Made by a program: the position numbers and the translations under genes. The notes under the pieces were generated by a model that worked only from the letters and a program-made list of their open reading frames with translations, searched no databases and was not told where the DNA came from. From Octopus sinensis (taxonomy: Eukaryota): a stretch of 64,000 nucleotides of DNA. How positions within the stretch are numbered: the stretch's first letter is position 1; every line of letters begins with the position of its first letter. Below are positions 50,734 through 63,237 of this stretch, piece after piece. Where the stretch lies: NCBI RefSeq assembly GCF_006345805.1, contig NC_043001.1, positions 43,958,001-44,022,000 of the forward strand, given 5' to 3'.

Positions 50734-50837
50734 GTACCTGAGTATCATCAACCAATGATGGAAAAGGCTACAGTTGCTTCCATAGGGTGCTCCTTTGCAG
50801 GAACGATGTTGATCCATTTTACATGGGTCTATCTAGG
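50734..50837 (+). CDS. Adhesion/class-B2-like GPCR exon, stalk end + TM1
   Basis: TTTTGTTTTAAACAG acceptor and GG|GTAAGT donor. The only open frame is VPEYHQPMMEKATVASIGCSFAGTMLIHFTWVYL; phase 0-2. Confidence 0.85.
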
Positions 50838-51879
50838 GTAAGTATCAACAGAAAGAAAAGATTACAGAACTCACAATTCAAAATTAGGAATCATAAACAT
50901 TTTGAACCAGTCTTTAAAATAAAGTACAGGAATACATCACGTTACGGTTGCATTATGTCACAGGATTTTGTGCTCGGGATACATTCTATAACTTCGCCCT
51001 TACGGTAGAAACTTGGATTAATTTTAAGACTTTTCACTATGAATAGTTGTGCATGTGTTCGCGTATATATATTTGAGTCAAAATGAGTATCTCTCTATCT
51101 CGCTATCTTCGTATCTAATTCATTCTATCGATCTGTATGTGTGTGTATATGTGTAAACCACTCTTCAGCATCACCACTTTGTATCATCAACACCACCAGC
51201 TCCACGACCATCACCTATACGAAAACCAATCCAACTACTGCCACTACCAACTCATCAAGTCTTTAATGACCAGTAATAGCAGCAACAATAGTATGAGCTA
51301 GATAAGCAAGTCCATCTAAAATAAAATACAACCCTATGAGATAATGTTACCTATTTTGAAAGAGATGTCTTTGAACTTAGGTCATGAGGATTGATTTGAG
51401 ACTAAACAGCAACGACAATACAGTTATCAAGAACAATAAAACCATCACCATCACTCACCCCCCACCACTACTAACAATACTTCCATTGTCACCAATATTA
51501 TTACCTCTACCAACTCGTCAACTTTCGAGCAACTAATTGATGTCTGTAGCTACATCAGTTGTATGTCAACACAACGGACTGTGTGTATGTGTGAGTGTGT
51601 GTGTGTGTGTGTGTGTGTGTGTGAGAGAGAGAGAGAGAGAGAGAGAGAGAGAGAAAGAGAGAGAGAGAGAGAGCTTTGAGATATTTTTAGCTCGAGACCG
51701 AGAGAGCAAAGTGCCCATGACTCTGGTAACCGTTCATCTAACTGTAATCATACAGTACATACCACTACCTAACTCTTTCATCCTTACATCTTATTGCCGT
51801 TTTTACATCCATAGGAATAAGGCAACAATTGTTTTGCTCTCACGAAGCAGTTCTTGGATTTACCAACAATTTATGATGT

Positions 51880-52080
51880 CTACAAAGAAACCATCAAGTG
51901 GAACTGACGGTAGTAGTACGAAAAGGAACCGTAAATGAATCATTCAGCATATTAAAAACTGATGTCTCAAAAAGGCTTGATGCGGGGAAAAATAAAATCA
52001 CTTACATTGCCAAAACATTGAAACTTACAACGTTTACAGTGGGAAAATGCGAGACAAAAGAAAGAAAATCAAGTCAAGTG
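51880..52080 (+). pseudogene. Tigger/pogo N-terminal fragment (related pieces at 53600-53715 + and 58620-58960 -)
   Basis: MSTKKPSS..KRNRK, KRLDAG..IAKTLKLTTFTVG and DWFERFKKR motifs. Confidence 0.6.
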
Positions 52081-52861
52081 TCCAAGAAATTACTTTGTTA
52101 ATTGAACGGACCTTATTTCATTTGTCAAAGTTATCTCTACAGATTTACTATAGAAATTAAGCCAGCACTAATTCTGTTACGACGTCTCGTATCTGAGACG
52201 TCTGACGTAAACGACAACATTGAGAACGAAGGTGAAAATTAGGTAATGAGCGTATATAACATATTTCAGGAGTTTTTGCTCCTTCGTCAGCATTCATCCA
52301 ACCCAATAATCATCCACGAACTCATTGCTTAAACAACCACTAAATATAGCGGTGTAACGTTATTGGATATACCAATTTTACAATTGCCCTACAGATCATT
52401 AATATTTACGGACCTTATTTTGTCAATGGTCTAATGTGTTGCTCAACCTGGAACGGCTCTTGTGTGAATGGACTGAGTATCAAATTCAAAGTACCGACAA
52501 GTTCAATGGCCCTTCAAAACCATGGGAGAAGCCTTTTCGGTAAAAAAAAATAAAGAAAATATTCGAAAAATATCGTTAATATTTTTATTGGGCGACGAAA
52601 TTAATCGATTTAAGAGATATAGCTGTTATTTCTAGCACATGTAGAAGACAGAAGAAGAGGTAAATAATTTGAGCTCGAATGCTGCGATTTCATTGGTTAA
52701 AAGTCTTAAAATTAAACTACGTTCAAGTTACGAATTACAATTTTGTTTTCAAATTTGTCTACAATAATGTTTTCTTTTGACACATTCTACCAGTATACGA
52801 AGTTTCAAATTGTTTAGTTAACTAGGAAAATCTGGCCTTCAAAAAGAAAAGATCCTCTATT

Positions 52862-53022
52862 CTATGTATCTATCTATCTATCTATCTATCTATCTATCTA
52901 TCTATCTATCTATCTATCTATCTATCTATCTATCTATCTATCTATCTGTCTATCTATCTATCTATCTATCTATCTATCTATCTATCTATCTATCTATCTA
53001 TCTATCTATCTATCTATCTATC
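52862..53022. repeat. (TATC)n microsatellite
   Basis: Direct tandem repeats. Confidence 0.95.
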
Positions 53023-53118
53023 TATTTACTTAAATAATGAGGGTGATAAATTGAATATTAATTTGATTAACATCAATTTAAAACCAGTAGCCCAGCATAT
53101 AGAAAAATATGAAAATTC
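53023..53118 (-). mobile_element. (GATA)n-anchored element fragment; inverted twin of 58367-58462
   Basis: 96 bp with 1 mismatch to the reverse complement of 58367-58462. The terminal motif is related to the 22 kb and 27 kb elements. Confidence 0.8.
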
Positions 53119-53127
53119 AGATAAAGA

Positions 53128-60250: not shown

Positions 60251-61169
60251 TACTTAAAAACCGCGCTTTACTTATTGTATCCCTGCATGTCCAGCTCTGA
60301 TTGGTTGGAGCATACCACAGCACAACTGTGCTATGTCGTAGCAACACAACTAGCATTCCTGACTCACTACACATATATACGACGAGCTTCTTTCAGTTTC
60401 CATTTATCAAATCCACCCACAAGGCTTTGGTCAACCCGAGGCTGTAGCAGAAGACACTTGCCCAAGGTGCCACACAGTGGGACTGGACCAGGAACCATGT
60501 GGGTGAAAAGCAAGCTTCTTACCACACAGCCACACCTGTCAGCTTGAAGAAGACATTACACCTTATGCAGTTGCGGTGATACACAATAAATTATCACTAA
60601 ATGGTGAAATGCGAAGAAAGTAATGATGTTAAAAATAGTTGTCTTATTATTCGGATTCAATAGAAATGAGAAAATGAAAGGGTTTTAGGAGTAATGTCAA
60701 AGGGCAGATAGGAAGTACTGCATGATTAAAATTACAAGACCCAGGTCATTTGAACTGCTGGATCCAGAAACAAGGGCTGATGTTAGCAAGAGCATTGAGA
60801 GCAATGAAAAACAAGATCAGGTGAATTGGTCCACGCACAAATAAAGTGGAAATGGAGAAGAGGATGGATAGATGGAAGAGGACGGATAGAAACTTCAGAG
60901 TAGTGAAAAATAATGTGTGGGGAGAGGATGGAGTGAGTATGTGTTGGCAAAAATGTTAAGAATAGTGTAAAGTAAGGAAAAAAGATTGTAGGGGTAAACT
61001 TCATTTGACAATAGAATTGGTTGGCAGGAACTAACAAAAATTACAGAAAACTGCTGAAGAACTGACGTGATGAGTGGTCAGGCATATTAAAAAAAAGTAT
61101 TGAACAACTGAGTTCAATATAGAGGAAGGGAGAAGGGAGTTACATATAAAAACCAAACACGCCATCTTC

Positions 61170-62330
61170 AATTCAGTGTTTGTGCCTTATATACGGTCAT
61201 GAATCTTGTGTAATGACCGAAAGAATACGATCGCAAATACAAGCACCTGAAAGGGGGTTCCTCTGAAGGGTCTTTGGAGTAACGTTTACTCGACAGAGTG
61301 TGAAGCTCAGAGATAAGAGAGGTGCTCTAGGTGAAGTCGCTTCTTCTTCAAATTGAGAGATCACAAATCCGATATTACAGACGTGTGGTAAGGATGTCTC
61401 AGAAAACAATTGCTGGACAAGTTTTATGGACGAAACCATCCAGCAGGAGACCCAGAGCTCAGTGGTAGCTCATAGATAAAATTAGTGGGGATGCTGCTTC
61501 AGAAAATTTATAGCTGTTGTTTTAATATTGTGTAAAAAGAAACAAACAAATAAAAAGAAAATTTATACCTAAACTTGATCGGTTCATATTTTAGCCACTG
61601 CCGGGTAGTATGTTTAATTTGTTCACTGAACACTGCTGCGAATTACCCCTTGTTTTTCAAAAATTCCCACTAAATCACAAAATAAGGGAGGAAAGTCTGC
61701 TCTATTTTTCAAATCCTGGCAGCAACACTAATTGGAAGCAGGATAATAATCTAATTCTACACTTTATCACATTCAAGAATATAAACACGTTTTTAAGCAC
61801 AACACAAGCGGAGTCAAAAAGACACACTGCCTTTCACCAGCACACAAGGGTCGGCACTGCATGAACCACAGTGCTCTCTCTCCCTAGTGCGAAGCTTCCT
61901 ATCTTGGACATGTGAGTGTGTGCACAACAGCCAAACACTGTGTTGCTGGAACTGTGAAGCACACAGTTCTATACAAGAATTTTTGTATTTTTTCTATAAA
62001 TTAGGGGATGGCTACTGACATTAGGCTTAGGGATTATATAATGTACAAGTATAAAGAAAAAATTGAAGAAAAAAGGACTCATTATATTGAATGTTATCAA
62101 TAATATCGAGTGGAAATAGTGGGTGCTGCAGTTTTGCAGTGCCATACATGAACCGCCACTGCCAGAGCTAGACTACAAGCAAGATGTCTGAATAACATCC
62201 ATGAGTTCAGTTGGTCTTGCTTGGGGATCCAGCCGGATCAAGAAGAGACATTTGTTTCTGATAGGACCCAATTGGAAGGCATGCTTAAGGACTCTGCCTC
62301 CATGACCCTCCCAAGAATAAATGGGTGAAA
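61170..62330 (+). pseudogene. RTE-clade LINE 3' remnant interrupted by a hAT element
   Basis: YGHES.VMTERIRSQIQAPERGFL, EIREVL, QIERSQIRYY and KPSSRRP...RCLNNI continue across the insertion. Confidence 0.75.
61460..62161 (+). mobile_element. hAT non-autonomous element, 702 bp, 8-bp TSD
   Basis: CAGTGGTAGCTC...GAACCGCCACTG termini. TSD CCAGAGCT at 61452-61459 and 62162-62169. Confidence 0.92.
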
Positions 62331-62649
62331 AAGATGAGATGAGATTAGATGGGTTCAATCCCAATGCATGGTACCTTGGGCAAATATCTTTTATTATACC
62401 CCAAGCTGACCAATGCTTTGTGAATGAATTTGGTTAATGGAAACTATGTAGATACCCATTGTATTTATATTCATGTATGTGTGTGTAAGTGTATCTTTGC
62501 ACTTGTCCCCACCACACACACACACTTGACAATCAGTATAGGTTTCTTTACATACACAAAAATGATTGTATTCCTAGAGAGCAGGAACATGTCTGGTTAG
62601 ATGTGACTACTATCTCCTTTGGGAATATATATACACATACAAAAAGCAC

Positions 62650-62810
62650 CCACTACACTCACGGAGTGGTTGGCGTTAGGAAGGGCATCCAGCTGTAGAA
62701 ACATTGCCAGATAAGACTGGAGCCTGGTGCAGCCTTCTGGCTTCCCAGATCCCCGGTCCAACCCATGCTAGCATGGAGAATGGACGCTAAACGATGATGA
62801 TGATGATGAT
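62650..62810 (+). mobile_element. RTE-type 3' tail / SINE ending in (GAT)n
   Basis: GGTTGGCGTTAGGAAGGGCATCC...AACCCATGCTAGCATGGAGAATGGACGCTAAACGATGATG. Confidence 0.6.
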
Positions 62811-63144
62811 ATATTCTCTCTGCATAGCTTTTTTACAATATTTTACAATATCTCAACACATAATTTGTTGGCTTCAACAATTTTAAATGCAATATATTAC
62901 CTATTTTAGAGGTTTCCTCAGAATGAACATGTTTCACTAAAGGGGAAAACTGTACCATCTGTAATAGTTTGTAAGGTTGCAACGTATTTCAGTCAATGGT
63001 TTTTATGTTTTTCAATTGACCTCCCAGTAAAATCAACAATGAAACTGTTTGCATGTTACATGAAACATTGCTTTTTGTGAAGTCATCATTGTATTGTAGG
63101 CTTATTTTTTTTTATTTAATTTAATTTTATTTTATCAATTACAG

Positions 63145-63237
63145 GGCTTCTGTATAGCTGCAACTGTGGCAATAGTGTTTCTGTTCACATCAGCATATAG
63201 TTGGATGTTTCTTTTTGCCTGTTGGAAATTAGCAGAT
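63145..63237 (+). CDS. Adhesion/class-B2-like GPCR exon, TM3
   Basis: TTTTATTTTATCAATTACAG acceptor and GAT|GTGAGT donor. Phase 0-0: GFCIAATVAIVFLFTSAYSWMFLFACWKLAD, with the conserved top-of-TM3 Cys and the WM motif. Confidence 0.88.

Follow-up and report, generated by a model that had tools for sequence, protein, structure and literature searches.

We describe a headless adhesion-type G-protein coupled receptor (GPCR) gene that begins in a 64,000-nucleotide (nt) stretch of the Octopus sinensis genome (RefSeq assembly GCF_006345805.1, contig NC_043001.1, forward-strand positions 43,958,001 to 44,022,000). The whole of this stretch is referred to below as the window, and positions are counted from its first letter. 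An initial annotation, made from the sequence letters, had proposed three spliced exons of such a receptor at 50734-63237. We put at roughly 90% the probability that these are coding exons 2-4 of an annotated gene of nine coding exons, whose 305-residue product combines an adhesion-type seven-transmembrane (7TM) domain with the absence of any extracellular head. The identity of the gene as XP_036359261.1 is near-certain: the 114-residue peptide rebuilt from four exons of the window matches residues 1-114 of that protein in a profile search with 100% identity and 100% coverage, the 99-residue peptide of the three proposed exons is 100% identical to residues 16-114, and the genomic locus of XP_036359261.1 (GCA_006345805.1, CM016863.1; labelled L007 here) has 0 mismatches to window positions 38253-64000 over 25,748 nt. 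RefSeq lists this protein of 305 residues as ‘adhesion G-protein coupled receptor D2-like [Octopus sinensis]’. The gene is not new, since RefSeq already holds exactly these exons for both O. sinensis and O. bimaculoides. The ‘D2-like’ part of the name derives from automated annotation; the best relatives of solved structure are ADGRL3 and L2, then D1.

Direct reading of the sequence bears out the three proposed exons: 50734-50837, 55613-55712 and 63145-63237 are 104, 100 and 93 nt long, are preceded by the acceptors aaacag/G, ttccag/T and ttacag/G, and are followed by the donors gtaagt, gtaagt and gtgagt, respectively. Their phases (0-2, 2-0, 0-0) are those first given, and the rebuilt peptide runs through 99 codons without a stop. 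It was also fair to describe the gene as invisible to the open reading frame (ORF) track, in that none of the three exons lies in a long ORF of the correct frame. A strict scan of positions 50000-64000 for splice sites plus an open frame leaves only about 10 distinct candidate exons, most of them repeat-derived, and both 55613-55712 and 63145-63237 are among them. Alignments made by tblastn with a 54-58% identical homologue stop at the boundaries of the same three exons. Agreement of this kind goes far past what chance would yield. When homologous proteins were run against the window by tblastn, an extra match appeared at 48253-48300, MSVMYVFLTQMGNYT. The earlier gene model was thus exact for its three exons but had overlooked a first coding exon with 45 nt of coding sequence (48253-48297). 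This exon supplies residues 1-15 of XP_036359261.1, namely the Stachel-like N-terminus considered below and an N-x-T sequon, and its leader and acceptor are also kept in O. bimaculoides; the conserved acceptor at its start points to at least one 5′ non-coding exon upstream. Spliced mapping yields nine GT-AG coding exons in all, of 45, 104, 100, 93, 131, 61, 92, 130 and 162 nt, and 26.9 kilobases (kb) from ATG to stop. Transmembrane helices TM1-TM3 fall in the window and TM4-7 beyond its end, as had been anticipated. The gene is laid out as follows:

48231-48297, + strand: first coding exon, with acceptor AG at 48229-48230, a 22 nt 5′ leader and donor gtaagt at 48298
48253-48297, + strand: coding sequence of the first coding exon, ATG at 48253, 15 codons, MSVMYVFLTQMGNYT
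48298-50733, + strand: intron 1, 2436 nt, GT-AG
50734-50837, + strand: coding exon 2, 104 nt, residues 16-50, linker with His20, then TM1
50838-55612, + strand: intron 2, 4775 nt, GT-AG, with a mariner-type transposase fragment inside
55613-55712, + strand: coding exon 3, 100 nt, residues 50-83, TM2 and first extracellular loop (GLENTYPD)
55713-63144, + strand: intron 3, 7432 nt, GT-AG, with many microsatellites and repeats resembling short interspersed elements
63145-63237, + strand: coding exon 4, 93 nt, residues 84-114, TM3 with Cys86 and W103-M104
63238-64000, + strand: first 763 nt of intron 4 (whole intron 1692 nt)
window-equivalent 64930-75174, + strand: coding exons 5-9, 0.9-11.2 kb past the window end, TM4-7 and helix 8

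The class of the receptor was read from its 7TM domain. The full protein scores 67.8 bits against PF00002 (7tm_2; E 1.2e-18, cut-off 20.6). The Pfam check that accompanied the initial annotation therefore succeeds with the full protein but not with the window peptides of 99 and 114 residues, for which Pfam matches nothing up to an E of 10. On its own, so short and diverged a fragment would fail the same 7tm_2 test. Membership of the window peptides in 7tm_2 follows from their 100% identity to XP_036359261.1. A phmmer search of PDB sequences with the 99 residues gave weak matches (E 0.07-7) over TM1-TM3, eight out of eight of them to adhesion GPCRs (ADGRL3, ADGRD1), and with the full protein all 18 significant matches were again adhesion GPCRs (ADGRL3, D1, E5, E1, L2, F1, L4). 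A profile built from 24 family members reached ADGRL3 at 5e-51; adhesion GPCRs take the first 24 ranks among the PDB entries, and a secretin-type receptor (CRF2R) does not appear until rank 25, with 1.5e-20. The AlphaFold2 model (predicted local distance difference test, pLDDT, 82.7; predicted template modelling score, pTM, 0.80) contains seven TM helices, at 21-49, 54-78, 83-116, 123-148, 165-197, 204-230 and 239-261, plus helix 8 at 265-293, and the Foldseek top 20 for this model consists of adhesion GPCR 7TM domains throughout (target-normalised TM-score 0.79-0.87). The residues from which a secretin/adhesion 7tm_2 pattern had been recognized, H20, N61, Q70, C86 and W103-M104, align to their ADGRL3 counterparts, and D54, N61, Q70, E77, N78 and C86 are invariant in the family alignment. 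Since the protein passes PF00002 and adhesion receptors come first in the PDB, profile and fold results, the adhesion-type family-B assignment holds for the 7TM domain. That the protein might instead be a secretin-type (B1) receptor for a peptide hormone is barely credible: PF00002 is common to both types, and the CRF, glucagon and PTH receptors do occur lower in the match lists, but adhesion GPCRs are ahead by about 30 orders of magnitude in E-value, a hormone-binding extracellular domain is absent, and the 20 leading fold matches point the same way.

The extracellular side of the protein is another matter. His20 had been described as a stalk residue; there is no stalk, no GAIN domain and no GPCR proteolysis site (GPS), the protein begins 15 residues upstream of the first exon originally proposed, and TM1 is preceded by 20 residues only. 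Pfam recorded no domain other than PF00002 in any of the family members (21/21) or in the proteins scanned. A large extracellular region with adhesive domains was not found either, the annotated and homologous proteins being 200-390 residues long and carrying PF00002 only. At the equivalents of the GPS residues H-L↓T, the octopus protein has x-M/S↓V and the gastropod proteins S-D-L↓A; the H-x-S/T feature is absent. A six-frame regular-expression search of the whole window retrieved no C-x-C-x-H-[LMIV]-[ST] and no credible H-L-T-x-F motif, the GPS-type matches in the six frames being microsatellite and chance only, and the longer N-termini of gastropod members, used as tblastn queries, had no match upstream of the first coding exon. 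Six transcript-like contigs of a 54%-identical homologue have an in-frame stop 7 codons 5′ of the ATG and further stops beyond. We conclude that the O. sinensis product is without a signal peptide-bearing N-terminal fragment, adhesive domains or GAIN/GPS. Because the defining GAIN/GPS was sought and not found, we keep the receptor apart from the canonical adhesion GPCRs and describe it as an adhesion-type 7TM that lacks GAIN.

This conclusion has to be weighed against the proposal that the receptor is canonical after all, with the GAIN domain and adhesive head in unannotated upstream exons and the annotated Met internal to a longer protein. One observation speaks for that proposal and against ours: the first coding exon opens on a good acceptor (48229-48230), and the frame is open from this acceptor to the ATG (VSQKQPK-M), so that a longer O. 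sinensis isoform is formally possible. We nevertheless consider a canonical receptor quite unlikely. The O. sinensis, O. bimaculoides and Argonauta models all begin at this Met and all have 305 residues, a GPS or GAIN match is recorded in 0 of the 21 family members, the homologue transcripts carry the in-frame stop described above, and neither the six-frame motif search of the window nor, upstream, tblastn with the gastropod N-termini uncovered anything credible.

The gene has relatives well beyond the octopus. In a phmmer search against 1.84 billion representatives, the 99-residue peptide recovered a protein of 304 residues (E 6.3e-29, 58% identity over residues 1-96) together with five molluscan proteins at E 2e-6 to 3e-4, and all six score as Pfam 7tm_2; a word-indexed homologue search with the same peptide gave no match, though the exhaustive phmmer search recovered relatives. 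The named homologues, annotated as ‘adhesion GPCR D1-like / E4-like / latrophilin’ in RefSeq or GenBank, come from a chiton, scallops, an ark clam, a sea slug and abalones. The initial opinion that no orthologue could be assigned, and that the gene may be lineage-specific, is thus overturned: O. bimaculoides, O. vulgaris and Argonauta each have an annotated orthologue, and homologues of 200-390 residues occur across Mollusca, in octopods, gastropods, bivalves, a chiton and what is probably another cephalopod. The 54% identical homologue, for which many sequencing runs together yield 42 transcript-like contigs (2.2-3.3 kb), probably belongs to that other cephalopod, to judge from its identity level alone. 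The O. bimaculoides orthologue (XP_014768385.1) is 95% identical and agrees in all nine exon lengths, although its introns differ in size; the Argonauta hians protein, of 305 residues, is 88% identical. Comparison of O. sinensis with O. bimaculoides gives an identity of 96.7% in exons and 79.8% in 280-nt intron flanks, and a ratio of non-synonymous to synonymous rates (dN/dS) of 0.37, from 12.5 synonymous and 17.5 non-synonymous differences. This ratio, and exons that are better kept than their intron flanks, indicate that the receptor gene is under purifying selection.

The same data bear on the suggestion that we are dealing with a decaying pseudogene or an artefact of gene prediction. The exons are small and lie within sequence rich in transposable elements, and the transcript collection searched contained no octopus contig with the exact protein. 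Even so, we regard a pseudogene or artefact as very unlikely, given a 305-codon frame that is unbroken in three octopod genera, exon lengths that are equal in the two species compared, a dN/dS of 0.37, exons far better conserved than introns, and the presence of the homologue on 42 transcript-like contigs from many runs.

One annotated orthologue differs in extent. The O. vulgaris gene model CAI9722492.1 has 266 residues, the first of which corresponds to Met40 in O. sinensis; apparently it omits the 45-nt exon at the start of the coding sequence and 24 codons, out of 35, from the front of exon 2, and so lacks the N-tail and most of TM1.

The short segment that precedes TM1 resembles the tethered agonist (Stachel) of adhesion GPCRs, for which a consensus of TxFAVLM has been given (PMC12716839). 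The N-terminal peptide of the octopus receptor, our candidate agonist, is SVMYVFLTQMGNY; its motif is VMYVFLTQ, and that of the family consensus is ANYxFLMQ. HMMER aligns this motif in register with the ADGRL3 tethered agonist TNFAVLM (anYlFLmq against ANFAVLMA or NFAVLM), the ADGRL3 partners being ANFAVLMA in an uncleavable construct (8JMT), NFAVLM in 7WY5, and FAVLM, from residue 3, in 7SF7. The profile alignments extend to chain residues 1-3 of the Stachel-bearing structures of C-terminal fragments (CTFs) of ADGRL3, L2, D1 and G5, and the octopus M-S-V-M-Y-V-F-L-T-Q occupies the GPS -1 and T-x-F-x-x-L-M positions of ADGRL, ADGRD and ADGRG receptors. In the family alignment, the bivalve motif stands directly after the start Met (M-A-N-Y-M-F-L-M, M-A-S-Y-T-F-L-M), so that, in register with the tethered agonist, this Met sits at the position of the GPS -1 Leu. 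The cephalopod motif has one extra residue (M-S-V-M-Y-V-F-L-T-Q, M-A-V-N-Y-L-F-L-G-Q), and the gastropod motif is preceded by a short leader (...W-x-N-D-S-D-L-A-N-Y-G-F-L-M-Q). Across the family, conservation of F7 and of L8 is 90% or more; residues 1-18 are identical across O. sinensis, O. bimaculoides and Argonauta, and residues 19-26 vary. An N-x-S/T sequon follows the motif in most family members, which fits an extracellular tail. Compared with the Stachel position by position, the octopus motif keeps the P3′ aromatic, P5′ and P6′, but not P1′ and P7′.

We hypothesize that these features describe a receptor that carries its own agonist. TM1 would serve as a reverse signal anchor, so that the short N-tail and its N-Y-T sequon face the cell exterior. 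Since Ser stands at residue 2 (Ala or Pro in relatives), the initiator Met would probably be cleaved off, and the free N-terminus so exposed would resemble the one that self-cleavage gives a C-terminal fragment. The Y5/F7/L8 peptide, which is hydrophobic, may then fold into the orthosteric pocket as a built-in agonist, and the outcome would be constitutive G-protein signalling whose output follows the level of expression and not a force applied to an extracellular head. This self-agonist step is the mechanism that we prefer for the octopus receptor, albeit tentatively and at well under even odds. In its favor, engineered CTF-only adhesion GPCRs show raised constitutive activity (reviewed in PMC13197933). 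The evidence that weighs against it is of several kinds. A CTF-only transcript of mouse ADGRD1 with a truncated Stachel did not raise basal activity (PMC6667449). In cephalopods the motif departs from the consensus, with P1′ Thr replaced by Val, P7′ Met replaced by Thr or Gly, and one residue added; gastropod members have 10-45 extra residues before the motif, so that only part of the family would have a free N-terminus. Finally, AlphaFold2 gives the N-terminus low confidence, with a mean pLDDT of 51 over residues 1-10 and of 71 over residues 11-20, and the model offers no confident placement of this segment in the pocket.

Most of these points can also be claimed by the principal rival, which we rate slightly above self-agonism, although at somewhat less than an even chance. 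It accepts the receptor as real and takes the N-terminal motif as a relic of a lost GPS/Stachel; the pocket would then be occupied by an external ligand, either a small ligand or a peptide, or there would be no agonist-type activation at all, an alternative suggested for the GAIN-less ADGRA1. The low model confidence at the N-terminus, the cephalopod motif from which P1′ Thr and P7′ Met are gone, and the residues that precede the motif in gastropods are all consistent with a relic, as is the report that ADGRA1's short extracellular portion is dispensable for basal G-protein activation (bioRxiv 10.1101/2025.07.30.667713). Less easily reconciled with it are the identity of residues 1-18 in three octopod genera while 19-26 vary, the conservation of F7 and L8 (at least 90%) across molluscan classes, and the exact Stachel register relative to TM1 that has been kept.

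Extended from the octopus to its relatives, the self-agonist reading predicts a conserved, stand-alone molluscan family of ‘pre-cleaved’ adhesion GPCRs, which would have the start codon at GPS -1, would begin with a Stachel-like peptide once the initiator Met is gone, and would activate themselves without GAIN, cleavage or mechanical release. We regard this wider proposal as doubtful, more so than the self-agonist step in the octopus receptor itself. A literature search found no description of such a pre-cleaved family and no functional study of the gene or the family.

Comparison with known systems places the receptor more precisely. To canonical ADGRL2/3 and ADGRD1 (CTF structures 7SF7, 9E51, 7EPT and 7WU2) it is alike in its 7TM (profile E 5e-51 to 8e-44), in its fold (target-normalised TM-score 0.83-0.87), in the TM2 Asn, TM3 Cys and W-M pair that it shares with them, and in the register of its N-terminal motif with their tethered agonist, TNFAVLM / TNFAILM. 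Unlike these receptors, it is without GAIN/GPS, autoproteolysis, an N-terminal fragment or adhesive domains, it has about 305 residues as against roughly 900-1500, and it has neither the P1′ Thr nor the P7′ Met of their Stachel; in addition, the free N-terminus that canonical receptors obtain by self-cleavage would be provided in the octopus by the start of translation. ADGRA1/GPR123, which was not among the PDB matches of the octopus receptor, likewise joins an adhesion-type 7TM to a short extracellular N-terminus. It is the only human adhesion GPCR without GAIN and is still so classed by its 7TM (bioRxiv 10.1101/2025.07.30.667713). ADGRA1 is reported to be without a tethered agonist, however, whereas the molluscan family keeps a Stachel-like motif. 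Mammalian CTF-only isoforms that arise from internal promoters (mouse ADGRD1-6, ADGRB1 intron-17) are also 7TM-only with very short N-termini, and they begin at or within the Stachel (PMC6667449; PMC13197933). Those isoforms are minor products of genes that also encode the full receptor; in the octopus, by contrast, a stand-alone gene, conserved across molluscan classes, has the short form as its one annotated product. Lastly, Ritschard et al. 2019 described, as their group 3, an octopus-restricted tandem expansion of adhesion GPCRs with GPS motifs and leucine-rich repeats (PMC6408891). Group 3, like our receptor, is octopus class-B2 and was identified via PF00002 (PMC6408891), but the present gene stands alone in the window, is without a GPS, and has homologues in gastropods, bivalves and a chiton.

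The surroundings of the gene are rich in repeats. A young long terminal repeat (LTR) retrotransposon occupies 3339-8806, bounded by 300-nt direct repeats (3339-3638 and 8507-8806) that are 100% identical; its + strand ORFs encode reverse transcriptase and RNase H (5769-7406) and integrase (7181-8374). Within this element, 3935-4279 (+) and 4058-4402 (-) encode the same 115-residue peptide start, LCFSFRLVLVPFEICREGRS, and a 153-nt direct repeat is found at 3984-4136 and 5111-5263; the peptide on both strands and the repeat together point to an internal rearrangement or a nested copy. The mariner-type transposase fragment in intron 2 lies at 54251-54472 (+) and matches Pfam PF01359 at E 1e-21. 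Further transposase-like open frames are located at 1059-1610, 16772-17572, 18357-19285 and 46030-46617, and those of them that were scanned matched nothing in Pfam up to an E of 0.001; a reverse-transcriptase fragment at 28994-29701 (-; PF00078, E 2e-8) is probably of a non-LTR element. A short interspersed element is present in many copies on both strands, with recurring translated motifs, and is usually flanked by TA/CA/TATC microsatellites:

~10450-10730, 27090-27400, 27630-28160, 40340-40980, 42880-43280, 53200-53600, 54930-55320 and 60200-60540, both strands: short interspersed element copies

Outside the window, about 0.7 kb past the receptor stop, L007 carries a reverse-transcriptase (RVT_1) gene of 225 residues at 37656-41242 (-). 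Scans for Rfam families and for tRNA genes gave no match in the window.

At the level of method, our analysis indicates that the correct multi-exon model of this gene was recoverable from raw sequence, short of one 45-nt exon. The point of biological interest is the architecture: a GAIN-less adhesion-type 7TM with an N-terminus like a tethered agonist, found from chiton to octopus. If the pre-cleaved family is real, it would be a natural equivalent, fixed in the genome, of the CTF-only constructs engineered for the study of tethered agonism; and if the peptide is a working agonist, these molluscan receptors would provide a natural test of whether an exposed Stachel suffices for activation in vivo.

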